Part shown: positions 21,201 through 64,000 of the stretch, piece after piece | How the letters are laid out: each line of letters opens with the position of its first letter | How positions within the stretch are numbered: the stretch's first letter is position 1 | Assembly (NCBI RefSeq): GCF_036971445.1 | Contig: NC_091482.1 | Coordinates: 10,230,001-10,294,000 of the forward strand | From: Narcine bancroftii | Taxonomy: Eukaryota | Length of the DNA stretch: 64,000 bases | Direction of reading: 5' to 3' | The notes under the pieces: model-generated | Database searches by the model: none | Told to the model about the DNA's origin: nothing | What the model saw: only the letters and a program-made list of their open reading frames with translations | Made by a program: the position numbers and the translations under genes

Positions 21201-22505
21201 ATATATGCATATCTGGATAGGCATAGATTGATTAGGGGCACCCAGCATGGATTTGTAAAAGTCATGTTTGATGAACCTTGTTGAGTTTTTTGAGGAAGTG
21301 ACAAAAAAGGTAGATGAAGGTAGAGCGGTGGACGTGATCTATTTGGATTTTAGTAAGGTTCCGCATGGAAGGTTAATAAGGAAGGTTCAGTCACTTGGAA
21401 TTAGTAGAGAGATTGTGACATGGGTTCAGAGGTGGCTGGGAGATAGACCGCAGAGAGTCATGGTGGACAACTGTATGTCAGGTTGGAAGCCTGTGATAGG
21501 CGGGGTGCCTCAGGGATTGGTGCTGAGTCCCTTGTTGTTTATCATTTATATTAATGATTTAGAGGAGGGTGTGGTTAACTGGGTAAGCAAATATGCGAAT
21601 GATATGAAAATAGGGGGAGTGGTGGATAGTGAGGTAGATTTTCTTGGATTACAGAAGAATTTGGTTTGTTTGGAAGAGTGGGCTGATAGATAGCAGATGG
21701 AATTCAATATAGACAAGTGCTAGGTGTTGCATTTTGGTAAAAATAACCAGAATAGGACATATACAGTTAAGGGGAGGGCATTGAGGCCTGCAGAGGAGCA
21801 AAGGGACCTGGGGGGGGGGTTATGGTACAGAGTTCACTGAAGTTGGATTCCCATGTAGACAGGGTGGTTAAGAAGGCATATATATGGTATACTGGCCTTC
21901 ATAAATCATAGTGTAGAGAATAGGAGCAGGGAGGTGATGCTACAGCTGTTTAAGGCATTGGTGAGGCCAGGTTTGGAGTACTGTGCTCAGTTCTGGTTTC
22001 CAAATTATAGAAAGAATATAGATAAGATGGAGAGGGTGCAAAGAATGTTGCCTGGCTTACAGCATCTGGATTACATGGAGAGATTAAGGAGACTGGGATT
22101 TTATTCATTGGAACGTAGATGACTGAGAGGGTTCTTGATAGAGGTATTTAAAATTATGAAAGGAATAGATAGACTAGTCATAAACAGACTCTTTCCCCTG
22201 AGGGCAGGGGAGGTTGGAACAAGAGGCCATGAGTTAAAGGTAAGGGGGCAACACTTTAGGAGAGGTGGCTTTTTCACTCAGCGAGTGGTGGCAGAAAGGA
22301 ATGAACTTCCGAATGAGATAGTTGCATCATGGTCCCTTCTGTCATTTAAGAGAAGGTTGGATGTGTACATGGAGGTGAGGGGGTTGGAGTGTTATTGGCA
22401 GTGAGCGGGAGGTTTGAGCTAGTGGAGTTGTTCTAATGAACCGGTGCGGACTCGAAAGTCCGACATGGCCTGTTTCCGCTCCGTAAATAGTTATATGGTT
22501 GTATT
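18225..22505 (+). mobile_element. Near full-length decayed CR1 LINE (ORF1 zinc finger/leucine zipper/SGNH esterase; ORF2 APE-RT)
   Basis: ORF pieces VCLPGARV..VVHV (esterase), CIYFNARS, GVYYRPP, GNFNFP (APE), YLDFSK, GVPQG, SKYAND (RT), and a gttatatggttg tail. Several stops and frameshifts; deletion near 20996. Confidence 0.93.
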
Positions 22506-49670: not shown

Positions 49671-50133
49671 TATTGTAGGTACTCAAACGTGCCAAATCCC
49701 TCAATGTGTCTGCAATTCTGATGCTCCATCGCTTCAATGTTAAACATGATCAACTGTGTCACTTCCACCACATCCCAGTCAAGCTGCCGGGAAGAAAGAA
49801 CAAATCTCTCTGAATGCCAATATAGACCGGCTGCCTGAAAATAAAACACTAGATCTAAACGTCAATGTCATAAACAGCTTGTAAATGCACCATGCAGTGA
49901 ATTATTTATCATTCATTCATCGCCATTTGCTCTCTCCTAAAGGGCATGTAGTGATGTCTGTGTCTGTGTAACAAAATAGCTTGGATGCTTTAAAAATGAA
50001 ATGAGGCAAATTCAGGATCAAAAAAATTACATTGATGGAACTCCTGAAAGGCTGAGAGAAGAGTTGTGTGGACAATATACATTGGTTTTAAATTAAATGT
50101 AAATTTTAACTAATTTACAACATGGGAGAAGCC

Positions 50134-50612
50134 AGTTAATTTTCTATCCCAATAATTCACCGTACTGCTCCAATGTATCATTCAGATTCCCCAAAGACCT
50201 CAAAGGTTGTGTTAAATATATCAAAACATCATCTGCAAACAAATCTATTTTATACTTGTCAGCTTTCACCCCAATACCCTTAATATTACTTTCTTGTCTA
50301 ATCATCTGAGCCAAGGGTTCAATAACCAATGCAAATAGAGATGGTGACAAAGGATAGCCTTGCCTAGTTGATCTAGATAACATAAAAGGTGAAGATACGC
50401 ATCCATTTGTCACCACCCTAGCAGTAGGATTTTTATATAAGGCCTTAGAGGCCCAAAATTAAACTTTTCCAAAACTTTAAACAAAAAAACTCCATTCCAC
50501 TCTATCAAAGGCCTTTTCCGCATCAAGAGAGATTACCATTGGTTGATCAGACTGCTCCCGAGAAATATTAACTAAATAAATCAACTTTACAACATTATCT
50601 GCTGGGGAAAAA
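50134..50612 (-). mobile_element. Internal L1 RT-core fragment inserted in a SINE with a 15-bp TSD
   Basis: SLDAEKAFD, TRQGYPLSP, LFADD on the minus strand. Flanked by aacatgggagaagcc at 50119-50133 and 50613-50627. Confidence 0.88.
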
Positions 50613-54882: not shown

Positions 54883-57351
54883 GGGGGTGTGGCAAGATGG
54901 CGTAGAGTCTAGACGTGTAATCTCGACCTCTCTGGCCAGACTTTTAAGTACCTGTTTTTTAACTCTTTGTTTTTTTTGTTATTATGATATTTTGATGTTA
55001 TTGATTGTTTGGCTGGGGAGGGAGAGATTTGCACTAAGTTCTTTACTCGTCATCAGCCACTGGTGGGTGACCCACACCCAATTTTTGTTTAGGGGATTAC
55101 TACCTTTTGGTAGTTCTTTTGTGGGGGGGGGGGGGGGGGATTTTCTTTTTTTTTTCTTTATTTTTTTATTTTTATTTTAGTTAATTTTTAATTTGTGATT
55201 TTTTTTCTATTGGAGGGCCTATATACGTTGATTTGAGTTTTTATATAAAGATATTATTGGTATTTAGTAATAATAGCAGGTATGTCAAAGTTGAGGTTTG
55301 CTACTTTTAATGTTCGAGGATTAAACAGTCAAATTAAATGTAAGCGAGTCTTGGCTTATATTAAGAAAATGAAAATTGATATTGCTTTTTTACAAGAAAC
55401 ACATTTGAATGTGAAGGAAAGCATGAAATTAAAGAGGGACTGGGTTGGGCATGTATATTCTTCTTCATTTAATTCTAAAGCTAAAGGTGTAGCAATTTTG
55501 ATACATAAAAATTTATCTTTTGAATTACAATCAATGGAAGAAAAGGCAGGATGTGTTCTTAAATTGAATTGTAAGATTTTTAGTGAATTTTGGACTTTAC
55601 TTAATATTTATGCTCCAAATGTAGATGATGAAATATTTATTTCAGATGCATTTTTATGTTTGGGTCAGGCTAATGATAATATTTTAGTTGGTGGTGATTT
55701 TAATTGTGTTTTGGAACCTTTATTAGATAAATCTCCGAAGAAAGTTTAAAAAATCTAAGACGGCAATCCAGGTCCAAGCGTTGATGAAAGATCTTAATTT
55801 AGTAGATATTTGGAGGCGTCTTAATCCAACAGAGAAAGATTTTTCCTTTTATTCATCTAGACATGAATTGTTTTCAAGGATTGACTTCTTTTTAGTATCA
55901 GCACATTTACAAGGGAAAATACAACAAGCGGAATATAAAAGTAGGGTGATTTCAGATCATATTTTACATATGCAACTTCTGAGAAAATTCAAATGGCTTA
56001 TCGTTGGAGATTTAATACAATGTTGTTAAAAAATAGGGAATTTATTGATTTTTTGAAAAAACAAAATTTTTTGAAAGAAAATTCTAATTCTGTTCAAAGT
56101 AAGTTTGTATTATGGGATGCTATGAAAGCCTATTTGAGAGGACAAATAATTAGTTATACTTCTAAAATAAAAAAGAATCGATTAAATCAGAGTCTTGAAT
56201 TAGAGAAACAGATTGATGAATTAGAAAAGGAATTTTAGAAAGATGCTACAGAAGATCAGAAAATAGAATTATCTAGGTTGAAATTGGAATAATACTTTGC
56301 AATCTTATCAGTTTGAATGTGTGATTAATAGGACTAAACAACAGTATTACAAATGGGGAGAGAAAGCACATAAGTTTTTGGCGTGGCAATTAAAGAAAGA
56401 ACAGATTTCGAGGACTATTAATGGAGACAGAATTCTCTTATTACTTATAAACCTCGTGAGATTAATGATGAATTTTATTCATTTTATAAAAAGTTATATA
56501 CATCTGAAGGAAAACAAGACACTGGATCAATTGATTTTTTTTTAAATCACAGTTGAATTTACCGATATTAGAGGATGGAGATATACAGGAGTTAGAAGAA
56601 CCATTTACTGATTCGGAAATTAAAATGGCTATGCTGGAAATGCTGAACGGTAAATCGCCTGGTGATGATGGATTTTCGGTTGAATTTTATAAAATTTGTT
56701 ATGATTTATCTACAGTGTTTGGGGATGTATTACGTCAAGTTGGAGAACATTATGAATTACCTGAGTCTTGCTCTAGTGCTTTAATTACAGTAATTCCTAA
56801 AAAAGATAGAGATCCTTTGAAAGTATCTTCATATAGGTCAATTTCGTTGTTAAATGTAGATTAAAAAATAATAGCTAAAATATTAGCGAATAGATTGGCT
56901 AAATTTTTACCCAAGTTGATTCGTATTGATCAAACAGGTTTTATAAAGAATAGATATGCTTCAGATAACATTTTGCATGTGATTAGTTTGATTAATAGAT
57001 TTCGACAATTCTTTGATCATCCGATGGTGATACCTTTAGATGCAGAAAAAGCATTTGATAGTTTTTAAAACTGATAATCTGATAATGAAACATCCTTTGC
57101 GAATATGGGCATAATTTAGAAAGTTTTGTGGATTTCAGTTTTTCTCTTGCCAGATCTATTAAATCTAAACATTCTTTTCAACCTTCTTTACTGATACTGA
57201 TTTTAAGGACTGGCATAAATTAGTTATTAAATGTTTTAAAGACCTTTCTATTTGAAACTATTTTGCTTCCTTTGAACAACTGGCAGTAAAATTTAACTTA
57301 CCAAATTTTTTTTTAAAGTAAATTACAAGTTAGACATTTTGTTCAATCAAA
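54883..57351 (+). mobile_element. L1 LINE (5' end, no ORF1, ORF2 endonuclease and partial RT), continuing after the nested CR1 at 59797-60186
   Basis: 5' gggggtgtggCAAGATGGCG; ORF2 TFNVRGL, FLQETH, NIYAPN, GGDFN, SRIDFF, SDH, KSPGDDG, YRSISLLN, DAEKAFD, then FASFEQL...QVRHFVQS. Confidence 0.9.
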
Positions 57352-59796
57352 TAGGAGGATGTAGAGGATGAATGCGTGGCTAAAGAGATGGTGCAGGGGC
57401 AAGGGATAAGGTTTCTGGATCATTGGGATCTCTTCTGGGGAAGGTCGGACCTGTACAAAAGGGACGGACTCCACTTGAAATGGAGGGGGACCAATGTGCT
57501 GACAAGCAGATTTGCTAGAGCTGTGAGGGAAGGTTTAAACTAGTTTGGCAGGGGGATGGGGAACAGAGTGTGAGAGCAGTGTCAAGGAAGCATGGCCACC
57601 TAGATAGGAATAATAACGATAACAAAGGTAGGATAGAGATTAGGGTAAAAGGTAGAAAAGAGAATATAGGTGAGGGTCATTCTCTGAAATGTATATATTT
57701 TAATGCAAGAAGCATAGTGAACAAGAAAGATGAGCTTAGAGCATGGACAGATACTTGGGGTCATGATATTGTGCCAATTAGTGAGACCTGGCTACAGGAG
57801 GGGCAGAACTGGCAACTTAATATTCCAGGATTCATTTGTTTTAGATGTGATAGATCAGGGGGTAAAAAAGGGGGAGGAGTTGCTCTGCTTGTTAAGGAGG
57901 ACATTACTGCTGTGAGGTGGCAGGATGGTCTGGAGGGATCGTCCAGTGAGGCTGTTTGGGTGGAATTGAGGGGTGCTAATAGGGGTGTATTACAGACCAC
58001 CAAATTGGCCAAGAAAATTAGAGGAACAAATTTGTAGGGAGATAACATATATGTGTGAGAATTATAAGGCAGTGATCATGGGAGATTTTAACTTCCCTCA
58101 CATTGATTGGGATACGCATACAGTTAGAGGGCTGGATGGGCTAGAGTTCGTTAAATGTGTTCAAGATTGTTTTCTAAATCAATTAGTAGAAGAACCGACT
58201 CGGGACGATGTAATACTAGATCTCCTGTTAGGGAACGAGCTAGGTCAGGTATTGGACATTAATGTTGGAGAACAAATTGGTTCTAGTGATCATAACTGTT
58301 AGTTTTAGGGTAGTTTTAGGGAAGAGCAAGGAGGGGCCTAAAGTTGAGGTTCTGGTTTGGAGAAGAGCAAATTTCGAAGGAATGAGAAGGGATTTGGGGA
58401 GTATTGAGTGGGACAAGATATTTTCAGGTAAGGATGTAAATGAAAAATGGAGGATATTCAAAAAAGAAATATTGAGGGTACAGAGTAGATATGTCCGAGT
58501 GAGGATCAAAGGAAAGGCTGGAAGTCATAGGGAGGCTTGGTTTTCAAGGAATATTGGAAATTTGGTTAGGAGAAAAAGGGGTATAAAGAGCAGGGAGCTG
58601 AGAATTTGAAGGAGGACTACAAGGAGTATAGAAGGAATCTTAAGAAAGAAATTAAAAAGGCCAAAAAAAGGCACAAAGAGGCTTTGGCAGACAGAGTAAA
58701 AATATATCCAAAGGGTTTCTATAGGTACATTAAAAGTAAAAGATTAGTGAGGGATAAAATTGGACCCCTTGTAGATAGCGAGGGTAGGCTGAGTGAGAAG
58801 TTGGAAGAAATGGGGGAAATTTTGAATGATTTCTTTGCCTCGGTATTCACTAGGGAAAAAAATATTGAACCAGTTGAAGTAAAGAAAAATAGTGGGGAGG
58901 TCATGAAGCATATAAGGATAACCGAGGAGGTAGTGATGGCTGTGTTGAAAAAGATAAAGGTGGATAAATCTCCTGGACCGGACAAAATATTCCCAAGGAC
59001 ACTCAGGGAGGCTTGTGGACAGATAGTGGGGCCATTAACAGAAATATTTAGGATGTCACTGGCCACGGGGGTAGTGCCAAAGGATTGGAAGGTGGCGCAT
59101 GTGGCTCCACTGTTAAGGAAAGGGTCCAAATGTAAACCTGGGAATTATAGGCCTGTGAGTCTGACGTCTGTGGTGGGCAAGTTGATAGAAAGTGTTCTGA
59201 GAGATGGTATTTACAAATATTTGGAGGTACAGGGATTGATAGGGAGTAATCAACATGGTTTTGTCAGGGGTAGATCATGCTTGACAAACCTGACTAAGTT
59301 TTTCGAGGGGGTTACAAAAAAGGTTGATGAATGGAAAGCTGTGGATGTTGTCTATTTAGACTTTAGTAAAGCTTTTGACAAAGTTCCCCACAGGAGGTTA
59401 GGAAAAAAGGTGGAGACATTAGGTTTAAATAAGGAGGTAGTGAAATGGATTCAGCAATGGTTGGATGGGAGGTGTCAGAGAGTAGTGGTAGAAAATTGTT
59501 TGTCCAATTGGAGGCCAGTGACCAGTGGAGTTCCTCAGGGATCGTTCCTGGGTCCACTATTGTTTGTTCTATATATTATCGATCTTGAAGTAGAGGTGGA
59601 GAATTGGATGAGCAAGTTTGCGGATGACACAAAGATCAGTGGTGTTGTGGACAGTGAGGAAGATTACCGTAGATTAAAAGGTGATTTAGGAAGGCTTGGA
59701 GGTATGGGCTGAGAAATGGCTGATGGAATCAGCCATTAAGGCATGGACTAGTAGGGCCAAACTGGCCTGTTCTGTGCTGTAAGTGGTTATATGGTT
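57352..59796 (+). mobile_element. 5'-truncated CR1 nested in L1 ORF2
   Basis: ORF1 esterase end (DHWDLFW..DGLHL), APE, and a 368-aa RT ORF (58606-59712, KFADD). aaa on both sides restores L1 GTT CAA TCA AAG ATC CCT. Confidence 0.93.
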
Positions 59797-62700
59797 AAAG
59801 ATCCCTGAATTCTCAAGAACTCCTGAGGCAAATATTCTTGATTTACTTTGATTTACAGTTTTGTCATAAAGGTTCAATATCAATTATTTATAACAATTTG
59901 CTTGATTTAAGGATAGCTTCAAAAGTTAAGATCAAGAACGATTGGGAACAGGATATGAATGCATAATTTTTGGATGAGGTTTGAGATTCGATTTGTAATC
60001 TGATTAATGCGACCTCCTTTTGCGCACGACCTTGTTTGTTGCAATTTAAAGTGGCCCATCGAGTTCACATGTGAAAAGTTAAATGATCTCATTTTTATTC
60101 AGATACAAATACTCTTTTATGTGATAAACGCAACAAAAAAAAAAATTGATGCTTCGTTGGACTTGCCCTAGTCTAGAAAAATTTTGATAATGTAATAGAT
60201 AATGTAATGTAATAGATAAGGTTTACATTATTTGCAGTTGAACAAAACAGTTAAGTGTGAGGTGTTACATTTTGGAAAGGCAAATCTAAATAGGTCATAT
60301 GCATTAAATGGTAGGCTATTGAGATTTGCAGAGCAACAAAGGGATTTTGGAGTGATGGTAAATAGTACCCTCAAGGTCGATACTCAGGTCGATGGTGTGG
60401 TGAAGAAGGCATTTGGAATGCTGGCCTTCATAAATCGCAGTATTGAATTCAAGAGTAGGGAGGTTATGATGAAATTGTACAAGGCATTGGTGAGGCCAAA
60501 TTTGGAGTACTGTGTACAGTTTTGGTCACCAAATTATAGGAAAGATATAAAAATAGAGAGAGTGCAGAGAAGGTTCACAAGAATGTTGACAGGATTTCAA
60601 GGTTTGAGTTACAGGGAAAGGTTGTGCAGACTAGGGCTTTTTTTCTCTGGAGCGTAGAAGATTGAGGGGGGACTTGATAGAGGTGTTAAAGATTTTAAAA
60701 GAGACAGACAGAGTAAATGTGGATAGACTTTTTCCATTAAGAGTGGGGAAATTCAAACGAGAGAGCATGGTTTAAGATTGAAGGGGGAAAATTATAAGGG
60801 GAACATGAGGGGAAATTTCTTTACGCAAAGGGTGGTAGAGATGTGGAATGAGCTTCTGGCAGACATAGTTGAGACGGGATCATTGGTTACATTTAAGGAT
60901 GGACTGGATAGTTACATGGAGAGGAGAGGACTAGAGGGGTATGGACAGTGCTGCTCAGTGGGACTAGGAGGGTGGGGATTTGTTTCAGCATGGACTAGTA
61001 GGGCCAAACTGGCCTGTTCTGTGCTCTAAGTGGTTATATGGTTAAAGATCCCCGACTTCTCAAGAACTCCTGAGGCAAATATTCTTGATTTACCTTGATT
61101 TACAGTTTTGTCATAAAGGTTCAATATCAATTATTTATAACAATTTGCTTGATTTAGGGATAACCTCATAAGTTAAGATCCAGAATGATTGGGAACAGGA
61201 TTTGAATGTATAATTTTTGGATGAGGTTTGAAATTCGATTTGTAATCTGATTAATGCGACCTCCTTTGCGCACGACCTTGTTTGTTGCAATTTAAAGTGG
61301 CCCATCGAGTGCACATGTGTAAAGTTATATGATCTCATTTTTATTCAAATACAAATACTCTTTTATGTGACAAACGCAACAAAAAAAAAAATTGAGGCTT
61401 CATTGGACTTGCCCTAGTCTAGAAAATTCTTGATAATGTAATAGATAATGTAATGTAATAGATAAGGTTTACATTATTTGCAGTTGAACAAAACAGTTAA
61501 GTGTGAGGTGTTACATTTTGGAAAGGCAAATCTAAATAGGTCATATGCATTAAATGGTAGGCTATTGAGATTTGCAGAGCAACAAAGGGATTTTGGAGTG
61601 ATGGTAAATAGTACCCTCAAGGTCGATACTCAGGTCGATGGTGTGGTGAAGAAGGCATTTGGAATGCTGGCCTTCATAAATCGGAGTATTGAATTCAAGA
61701 GTAGGGAGGTTATGATGAAATTGTACAAGGCATTGGTGAGGCCAAATTTGGAGTACTGTGTACAGTTTTGGTCACCAAATTATAGGAAAGATATTAAAAT
61801 AGAGAGAGTGCAGAGAAGGTTCACGAGAATGTTGACAGGATTTCAAGGTTTGAGTTACAGGGAAAGGTTGTGCAGACTAGGGCTTTTTTCTCTGGATCGT
61901 AGAAGATTGAGGGGGAACTTGATAGAGGTGTTTAAGATTTTAAAAGAGACACACAGGGTAAATGTGGATAGACTTTCTCAATTAAGAGTGGGGAGATTCA
62001 AACTAGAGGGCATGGTTTAAGATTGAAGGGGGAAAATTATAAGGGGAACATAAGGGGAAATTTCTTTACGCAAAGGGTGGTAGGGATGTGGAATGAGCTT
62101 TTGGCAGACATAGTTGACACGGGATCATTGGTTACATTTAAGGATGGACTGGATAGTTACATGGAGAGGAGAGGACTGGAGGGGTATGGACCGGGTGCTG
62201 GTCAGTGGGACGAGGTGGGTGTGGATTTGTTACAGCATGGACTAGTAGGGCCAAACTGGCCTGTTCTGTGCTCTAAGTGGTTATATGGTTAAAGGTCCCC
62301 AACTTCTCAAGAACTCCTGAGGCAAATATTCTTGATTTACCTTGATTTACGATTTTCTCATAAAGGTTCAATATCAATTATTTATAAAAATTTGCTTGAT
62401 TTAAGGATAACCTCATAAGTTAAGATCAAGAATGATTGGGAACAGGATTTGAATGTATAATTTTTGGATGAGGTTTCAGATTCGATTTGTAATCTGATTA
62501 ATGCGACCTCCTTTGCGCTCGACCTTGTTTGTTGCAATTTAAAGTGGCCCATCGAGTTCACATGTGTAAAGTTAAATGATCTCATTTTTATTCAGATACA
62601 AATACTCTTTTATGTGATAAACGCAACAAAAAAAAATTGATGCTTCATTGGACTTGCCCTAGTCTAGAAAAATTTTGATAATGTAATAGATAATGTAATG

Positions 62701-64000
62701 TAATAGATAAGGTTTACATTATTTGCAGTTGAACAAAACAGTTAAGTGTGAGGTGTTACATTTTGGAAAGGGAAATCTAAATAGGTCATATGCATTAAAT
62801 GGTAGGCTATTGAGATTTGCAGAGCAACAAAGGGATTTAGGAGTGATGGTAAATAGTACCCTCAAGGTCGATACTCAGGTCGATGGTGTGGTGAAGAAGG
62901 CATTTGGAATGCTGGCCTTCATAAATCGGAGTATTGAATTCAAGAGTAGGGAGGTTATGATGAAATTGTACAAGGCATTGGTGAGGCCAAATTTGGAGTA
63001 CTGTGTACAGTTTTGGTCACCAAATTATAGGAAAGATATAAAAATAGAGAGAGTTCAGAGAAGGTTCACGAGAATGTTGACAGGATTTCAAGGTTTGAGT
63101 TACAGGGAAAGGTTGTGCAGACTACGGCTTTTTTTCTCTAGAGCGTAGAAGATTGAAGGGGGACTTGATAGAGGTTTTTAAGATTTTAAACGAGACAGAC
63201 AGAGTAAATGTGGATAGACTTTTTCCATTAAGAGTGGGGAAATTCAAACGAGAGGGCATGGTTTAAGATTGAAAGGGGAATATTATAAGGGGAACATGAG
63301 GGGAAATTTCTTTACGCAAATGGTGGTAGGGATGTGGAATGAGCTTCTGGCAGACATAGTTGAGACGGGATCATTGGTTACATTTAAGGATGGACTGGAT
63401 AGTTACATGCAGAGGAGAGGACTGGAGGGGTATGGACCAGGTGCTGGTCAGTGGGACTAGGAGGGTGGGGATTTGTTACAGCATGGACTAGTAGGGCCAA
63501 ACTGGCCTGCTCTGTGCTGTAAGTGGTTGTATGGTTAAAGATCCCCGACTTCTCAAGAACTCCTGAGGCAAATATTCTTGATTTACCTTGATTTACAGTT
63601 TTGTCATAAAGGTTCAATATCAATTATTTATAACAATTTGCTTGATTTAATGATAGCCTCATAAGTTAAGATCAAGAATGATTGGGAACAGGATTTGAAT
63701 GTATAATTTTTGGATGAGGTTTGAAATTCGATTTGTAATCTGATTAATGCGACCTCCTTTTGCGCACGACCTTGTTTGTTGCAATTTAAAGTGGCCCATC
63801 GAGTGCACATGTGTAAAGTTATATGATCTCATTTTTATTCAAATACAAATACTCTTTTATGTGACAAACGCAACAAAAAAAAATTGAGGCTTCATTGGAC
63901 TTGCCCTCGTCTAGAAAATTCTTGATAATGTAATAGATAATGTAATGTAATAGATAAGGTTTACATTATTTGCAGTTGAACAGAACAGTTAAGTGTGAGG
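59741..64000 (+). repeat. Tandem array of a ~1247-bp CR1/L1 chimeric unit (3.4 copies, runs off the window)
   Basis: gcatggactagtagggcc at 59741, 60988, 62235 and 63481; near-identical RT ORFs at 60232, 61478 and 62723. Confidence 0.97.

Follow-up and report, generated by a model that had tools for sequence, protein, structure and literature searches.

A short array of 1.25-kb tandem units within a CR1-in-L1 nest of Narcine bancroftii, putatively seeded by the repair of a single break

Organisation of the locus

We analysed a stretch of 64,000 nt of the Narcine bancroftii genome (contig NC_091482.1 of assembly GCF_036971445.1, positions 10,230,001 to 10,294,000 of the forward strand), hereafter called the window, of which the last 9 kb contain the remains of an L1 retrotransposon, a CR1 retrotransposon lying in the second open reading frame (ORF2) of that L1, and a tandem array of units made of CR1 and L1 sequence. 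From the CR1 body to the window end, the order of the blocks is A-f1-CD-f2-B-CD-f2-B and so on, where A is the body of the CR1, B the C-terminal part of its reverse transcriptase (RT) with the remainder of ORF2, C its 3′ tail, D the adjoining piece of L1 ORF2, and f1 and f2 are short junction sequences. This order had been proposed in a first-pass annotation of the window and is present in the sequence. The most economical reading, which we consider probable, is that a single DNA break between A and B was repaired with a templated copy of CD, and that the direct repeats thus created were later multiplied by unequal exchange. The features on which this reading is based are as follows, with the means of their assignment in brackets.

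55276 to 57059, plus strand: L1 ORF2, endonuclease and first part of the RT, amino acids (aa) 11-616 of reference protein P0045 (tblastn, full-length L1 ORF2 proteins)
57076 to 57352, plus strand: L1 ORF2 after an internal deletion, aa 937 to ~1027, ending ...LQVRHFVQSN (tblastn with P0045 and P0041; translation)
57353 to 59729, plus strand: CR1 body A (terminal part of ORF1, endonuclease, RT as far as ...WLME), 5′-truncated and frameshifted (Pfam, blastn, paralogue contigs)
59715 to 59737, no strand assigned: perfect hairpin AATGGCTGAT-GGA-ATCAGCCATT with 10-bp arms and a 3-nt loop, lying across the A/f1 junction (hairpin search)
59730 to 59740, plus strand: filler f1, CAGCCATTAAG, 11 nt (CAGCCATT is the snap-back copy; TTAAG equals positions 13-17 of B, 60251-60255)
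59741 to 59800, plus strand: C copy 1, the CR1 3′ tail (same register as 60988, 62235 and 63481; drop in paralogue depth)
59801 to 60185, plus strand: D copy 1, L1 ORF2 at about aa 1031-1155 of P0045, from IPEFSRTP to the CCHC motif ...WTCPSLEKF (tblastn; translations)
60186 to 60238, plus strand: f2 copy 1, with direct duplications of GATAATGTAAT at 12-nt spacing and of TAATGTAATAGATAA at 17-nt spacing, followed by GGTTTACATTATTTGCAGT (template search)
60239 to 60987, plus strand: B1, the CR1 RT C-terminus (LNKTVKCEVLHFGK...) with the remainder of ORF2 and the beginning of the 3′ untranslated region (blastn, anchors)
60988 to 61484, plus strand: C+D+f2, copy 2 (exact anchors)
61485 to 62234, plus strand: B2 (exact anchors)
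62235 to 62729, plus strand: C+D+f2, copy 3 (exact anchors)
62730 to 63480, plus strand: B3 (exact anchors)
63481 to 63976, plus strand: C+D+f2, copy 4 (exact anchors)
63977 to 64000, plus strand: start of B4, cut by the window end (exact anchors)

A tandem array of CR1 and L1 sequence

A repeat search detected direct repeats with a spacing of 1245-1247 bp between 59.7 kb and the window end. Up to position 64000 the array contains four copies of C+D+f2 (495-498 nt each, with C starting at 59741, 60988, 62235 and 63481 according to exact anchors, GCATGGACTAG...), three full copies of B (749-751 nt each) and the opening 24 nt of another (the B copies begin at 60239, 61485, 62730 and 63977, exact anchors TGAACAAAACAGTTAAGTGTGAGG), which makes 3.4 units or more; unit 4 is cut off by the window end, and the array extends past 64000. 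The first C+D+f2 block of 498 nt consists of the CR1 tail and 438 nt of L1 flank, and without f2 it measures 445 nt, in agreement with the ~445-bp CD copy proposed earlier, the repeated block including f2 being 498 nt. With a period of 1245-1247 bp, four CD copies and three full B copies, this is a tandem array of head-to-tail units of at least 1 kb, and the earlier term macrosatellite is an overstatement for an array with 3.4 units visible. The array is absent from the Tandem Repeats Finder output because the longest period in that search was 500.

The CD+f2 copies are 95.6-98.4% identical to each other and the B copies 96.3-97.2%, with CD copies 2 and 4 being 98.4% alike and the other CD pairs ~95.6-96.4%. 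Sites at which the four CD+f2 copies are divided two against two mostly follow the pattern XYXY (n=8), all located in alignment columns 245-443 in the 3′ half of the block, while three XYYX sites are found in the 5′ half and one indel follows the pattern XXYY. The alternating likeness of the units is a mosaic, partly dimeric higher-order pattern, which fits stepwise exchange or conversion. An additional argument from a gradient of differences towards the array edge was dropped, as private differences are found in CD3 (8) as well as in CD1 (10, of which 8 in the 5′ half). The array is inert repeat DNA, and no function is implied.

Sequence contigs came from four runs covering 58001-64000, all consisting of short Logan contigs, two from organism A (X1 and X2, representing one sample that is possibly the source of the assembly) and one each from organisms B and C. 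In both X1 and X2, one contig matches unit 4 (63688-63821) with 0 differences. We consider it very improbable that the array is an assembly artefact, or that its unit is a dispersed mobile chimera instead of a local array. Such an explanation draws on there being one assembly only, on the short Logan contigs, which give no read spanning a unit, and on the occurrence of D-like L1 paralogues elsewhere in the genome (contigs at 60073), and it is opposed by the units differing at 1.6-4.4% of sites with structured sharing, unlike assembler duplicates, by the zero-difference contigs at unit 4 (with the limit that both runs are that one sample), and by the lack of a second copy of D or of the f2/B junction elsewhere in the 64-kb window. 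The mosaic pattern together with this level of divergence thus disfavours a duplication made by the assembler, and favours an old, slowly changing array. Position 61225 is invariant in the four assembled units and was split in X1, with a depth of 16 for A and 11 for G, the sole X2 contig having A; this split suggests either that there are more units past the window end or that the site is heterozygous.

A CR1 element nested in the coding sequence of an L1

The segment 57570-59709 has Pfam matches to Exo_endo_phos, Exo_endo_phos_2 and RVT_1 (profile positions 5-159 of 205), giving the order of an APE-type endonuclease followed by RT in one ORF2 that is collinear with other copies, as in CR1. 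Both A and B are collinear with a CR1 located at 19.7-22.3 kb of the window, and the blastn match of A, to 19.7-21.7 kb, ends at 59729. The CR1 boundaries are confirmed by the depth of paralogous contigs, which falls ~500-fold after 59800 and recovers at ~60240. In organism A the family is represented by ~5,600 Logan contigs that are at least 99% alike and ~8,600 at 95-99%, and it is also found in organisms B and C; these contigs show the family to be extremely abundant and young in this genome. Some CR1 paralogues have their own 3′ tail duplicated in tandem, with contigs that read ...GTGGTTATA, then one G, and then go back to AGGTGCTGGTCAGTGGG..., thereby joining 59791 to 63439, ~100 nt upstream in CR1 coordinates.

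For the surrounding L1, the RT piece 56553-56861 was used as query in an exhaustive HMMER search and retrieved full-length L1-like ORF2 proteins, of which P0001 is 92% identical to this piece. Using tblastn with P0045 and P0041, the parts of L1 ORF2 were found in the order of the reference and all on the plus strand, with aa 937-1017 of P0045 placed at 57076-57315 and D matching aa 1054-1139 in its first copy and aa 1054-1155 in its fourth, so that they form one collinear L1. The C-terminal CCHC motif in D (...LLCDKR...H/RWTCPSLEKF) is of the L1 type. The host L1 is not intact, since ORF2 aa 617-936 (~960 bp) are missing at 57060-57075, 280 bp upstream of the CR1 insertion point. A separate, inverted L1 ORF2 fragment (50132-50602, minus strand, P0045 aa 584-745) is located 5 kb upstream; it partly covers the segment that the host L1 lacks and also overlaps with the retained aa 584-616. 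According to the first-pass annotation the array would lie in an intron of an antigen-presentation gene, putatively a tapasin-like one; nothing recognisable was present in the ORF listing for 44.5-53 kb.

The boundary between the two elements can be read at the level of codons. Upstream of the CR1, the L1 ends with ...LQVRHFVQSN at 57352 and D starts with IPEFSRTPEA at 59801, and when these are joined, RHFVQSN plus IPEFSRTP aligns to the reference sequences ...RDFVKTHN PSFPNKPP and RDYVKKLF PHFPNRPP with zero codons missing. On this alignment the CR1 is nested cleanly inside L1 ORF2, with the host sequence resuming where it had stopped, and such a codon-exact nest indicates that D was already the flank of the CR1 before it was duplicated. 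The CR1-in-L1 nest of the first-pass annotation is thus retained, with the start of the CR1 moved from 57340 to ~57353, since 57340-57352 still read as L1 (...HFVQSN). The L1 references continue for ~108-113 residues beyond the end of D (CCHC motif, ~60185), and tblastn gave no match to this L1 remainder anywhere in the 64-kb window. D is a member of an L1 family of which further copies exist: position 60073 is G in all four units and C in every X1 and X2 contig and in 1 of 2 X5 contigs. D-like contigs, irrespective of orthology, are present in organism B and none were found in organism C.

The break point within the CR1

Block A ends with ...TGG CTG ATG GAA T at 59729, and B starts at 60239 with TG AAC AAA ACA GTT AAG TGT GAG GTG; joined together, they are translated in frame as WLME LNKTVKCEV. 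Paralogous CR1 contigs match up to 59729 and continue at 60247, 62738 or similar positions, having only TGAAT, TTAT or TTAATAGA in between, and the CR1 at 21.7 kb in the window reads QMEFNIDKC without interruption across the same point, as had been noted earlier for its intact junction at ~21695-21725. In these intact copies the first base of B directly succeeds the last base of A, and the break thus involved neither loss nor gain of sequence. It had been proposed before that B was displaced and not deleted, resuming within about 5 nt of the end of A; the displacement is confirmed, and the actual distance is 0 nt, with B resuming exactly where A stops.

This coincidence bears on two explanations in which A and B were separated by unrelated events. 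The first would have two CR1 insertions in one L1, an internally deleted copy (A-f1-C) and a 5′-truncated copy (B-C) ~440 bp downstream, followed by unequal exchange between their tails, or as a variant one CR1 RNA that was broken at the A/B point and used in two reverse transcriptions. Double hits in a region are conceivable for a family with this abundance and youth (thousands of contigs at least 99% alike), and copies of long interspersed elements (LINEs) are often 5′-truncated or internally deleted. We nevertheless regard this as extremely improbable, as one copy would have to be truncated at precisely the base at which the deletion in the other falls, and the shared tail provides only ~60 nt of homology. 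No CR1 truncation hot spot was found at the A/B point, and the copy at 32.2 kb, which in blastn apparently started close to it, continues upstream.

The second explanation is a tandem duplication of B-C-D-f2 and then an unrelated deletion of exactly the first B, which left f1 behind. Tandem duplications and filler-bearing deletions are each common, and the final structure is compatible with such a course; we estimate that for the left breakpoint of the deletion to equal the left boundary of the duplication to the base is a ~1-in-1000 coincidence over the ~2.4-kb CR1 body. The native CR1 sequence also has no mark of fragility at this base, as the hairpin described below exists only through f1, and we consider this course of events decidedly unlikely. 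A single break point at A/B, as in the repair of one break that we favour, is also supported by the unusual snap-back hairpin on the left side.

A snap-back hairpin at the left junction

The perfect hairpin at 59715-59737 extends across the A/f1 junction, and 8 of the 11 bases of f1 repeat, as reverse complement, the CR1 sequence immediately preceding the break. The left arm of the hairpin and the initial AT of its right arm are native CR1 sequence, and the 8 nt that follow are new. The left arm is recognised as native because paralogous contigs across the site, which read AAATGGCTGATGGAATTTAAT, carry AAATGGCTGATGGAAT, followed by TTTAAT. The inserted bases thus form an inverted repeat with the sequence adjacent to the break, with the terminal AT shared and 8 nt newly made, as is characteristic of snap-back synthesis. 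Hairpins with an arm of at least 10 bp and a loop of at most 12 nt occur three times in the 64 kb, with one located on the A/f1 junction, and the chance of finding one within 10 nt of this junction is ~1e-3. The two others are located at ~17590 (11-bp arm, 12-nt loop) and ~50975 (rich in A9/T9). The A/f1 hairpin, which is what extension of a folded-back 3′ end should yield, is a snap-back repair scar and marks a repaired break. The TTAAG at the end of f1 may be a second short copy, taken from the other side of the break, this match alone not being significant.

The right junction

At the other founder junction, the first ~34 nt of f2 are overlapping direct re-copies of the end of D, in the form of 12- and 17-nt microduplications. 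The earlier description of f2 as pure filler is thus not supported; f2 may be either repair filler or L1 sequence that contains a microduplication. All four copies share f2, and f2 therefore predates the expansion. In a search of the window for a template of f2, the sole match was one of 11 nt in antisense at 59129, within chance expectation; here, the 3′ part of f2 (60219-60229) shares 11 nt (AGGTTTACATT) with 59129-59139 on the minus strand, within CR1 body A and 600 bp before the break, and this chance-level match could be a further templated patch. One reading frame of f2 (...VIDKVYII) resembles the L1 references after the CCHC motif (P0012: FWSTVIDRIALV). In a position-score test of this L1 reading, the best window was CNVIDKVYIICS, with p=0.0056 among 46 windows or ~0.26 when corrected, which is not significant.

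The features of both junctions also have to be compared with an event that starts from the same break and makes the array in one step, either by template switching of the fork stalling and template switching (FoSTeS) or microhomology-mediated break-induced replication (MMBIR) type, or through a 1.25-kb B-C-D circle that undergoes rolling-circle copying, with the concatemer being re-inserted at an arbitrary phase. Such an event would share all features with the repair that we propose, namely the exact A/B break, the filler at the left edge and an array starting out of phase at C, and rolling-circle copying would yield several units at once. The circle requires a second break between D and the rest of the L1, as well as circularisation, amplification and a return to the same gap, whereas FoSTeS leaves unexplained why the sequence resumes at the exact base where A was left, and the hierarchical similarity of the units (CD2-CD4 98.4% versus ~95.6-96.4%) requires later exchanges whatever the model. 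We therefore regard a one-step origin as unlikely.

A proposed history of the array

In the history that we favour, ORF2 of an older L1 would first have received a clean insertion of a 5′-truncated CR1, so that the locus read L1-A-B-C-D-rest of L1. One DNA break would later have cut the CR1 at the point where ...ATGGAAT is followed by TGAAC..., and the 3′ end on its left side may then have folded back and copied 8 nt of its own strand by snap-back synthesis, before priming out of register where C begins, ~750 bp farther downstream, with either the sister chromatid or the same molecule as template. Here ~445-498 nt would have been copied, made up of the CR1 tail and its L1 flank and ending in small duplications by slippage, and the copied strand would have been released and joined to the intact right end at B, giving A-f1-CD-f2-B-CD.... 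The product would have been two 0.5-kb direct repeats 1247 bp apart, and out-of-register exchange or conversion between them would have led to the at least 3.4 units of CD-f2-B.

The anatomy, the exact contiguity of A and B, the hairpin scar and the codon-exact nest are read directly from the sequence, and the exact break and the scar lend support to the model of the first-pass annotation. Two components of that model are plausible only, namely that CD was copied into the break in one event and that the array grew by unequal exchange, which the mosaic and alternating variants fit without proving it. The enzymology may be polymerase theta (Pol theta) or synthesis-dependent microhomology-mediated end joining (SD-MMEJ)-like, an enzyme as such not being inferable from sequence. 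That in the germ line of a vertebrate a break with snap-back priming and a half-kb out-of-register copy seeded an array of kilobase units in one step is a possibility, for which we see the balance as nearly even and slightly unfavourable. If true, it would represent a route from a non-LTR (long terminal repeat) retrotransposon to a satellite that can do without double insertions and without internal repeats, and here the two founder junctions would still be legible.

Several observations weigh against the single-break history. In SD-MMEJ, newly made bases create the microhomology for the final join, and here there is none between f1 and C (0 nt), with f1 ending in ...AAG and the template before C in ...TCA or ...ACA, and at most 1 nt (T) between f2 and B. 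The last 3 nt of f1 have no demonstrated template, and the last 19 nt of f2 (GGTTTACATTATTTGCAGT) have no matched source in the window. Insertions made by Pol theta are typically tens of nt in length. The ~0.5-kb templated tract found here greatly exceeds in length the templated insertions reported for SD-MMEJ (PMC2943611). The right end of the array is located outside the window, none of the contigs listed bridges A/f1/C or f2/B or leads from D into the L1 remainder, and no outgroup allele was seen, organisms B and C being sampled as contigs only. Furthermore, the contig depth is summed over the abundant CR1 family and the L1 paralogues, and is not a copy number.

Comparison with known systems

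Tandem arrays derived from transposable elements (TEs) have been explained by a two-stage model, in which a small tandem seed is followed by unequal exchange (McGurk & Barbash 2018, PMC5932611). The array described here is similar to such TE-derived arrays and satellites (PMC5932611; reviews PMC9659126, PMC12628747) in having a unit built from retrotransposons, a founding duplication and out-of-register growth. It differs from them in its seed, which apparently is a break-repair copy and involves neither a double insertion nor an LTR-LTR exchange nor an internal repeat of the TE, in its unit, which consists of the 3′ third of the CR1 with 438 nt of L1 flank, and in its tiny size of 3.4 units. 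In the double insertions of McGurk & Barbash, the 3′ end of one element adjoins the 5′ end of the next with just a target-site duplication between them, and the 5′ ends of the two are independent. The array does not have this structure, as the CR1 parts are 438 nt of L1 apart and B has its 5′ end precisely at the point where A has its 3′ end. The conversion of LINEs to arrays is usually inferred from population statistics, because the founder junctions have been erased. Here the left founder junction survives with its exact break point and repair scar, which makes the seed event readable at single-base resolution, and if confirmed, break-repair duplication would be documented as a seeding route beside double insertion. 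On its own, this is one small, probably old, inert and putatively intronic array, which leaves knowledge of satellite evolution and of the host gene unchanged.

Junctions with snap-back inverted repeats have been described for SD-MMEJ (Yu & McVey 2010, PMC2943611), and extension in cis has been described for Pol theta (Kent et al. 2016, PMC4912351). The likeness to SD-MMEJ and Pol theta-mediated end joining (PMC2943611, PMC4912351, and Khodaverdian et al. 2017, PMC5728401) includes the inverted repeat at the junction, composed of native sequence and its new reverse complement with a 2-nt terminal match, and the overlapping direct re-copies of nearby sequence at the other junction. The difference is in the main tract, which here is ~0.5 kb and comes from ~750 bp away, with neither break end losing sequence. 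In this, the event looks more like an aborted out-of-register synthesis-dependent strand annealing that was finished by end joining.

Macrosatellites of the human type, such as D4Z4, have kilobase units that are arranged head to tail, as here, with a degree of higher-order similarity between alternate units. Compared with these, the copy number is far lower here, and the unit is without an intact gene. The array is a further, clean instance of processes already known, a tandem repeat derived from TEs with error-prone break repair as its probable seed, and not a new type of system.

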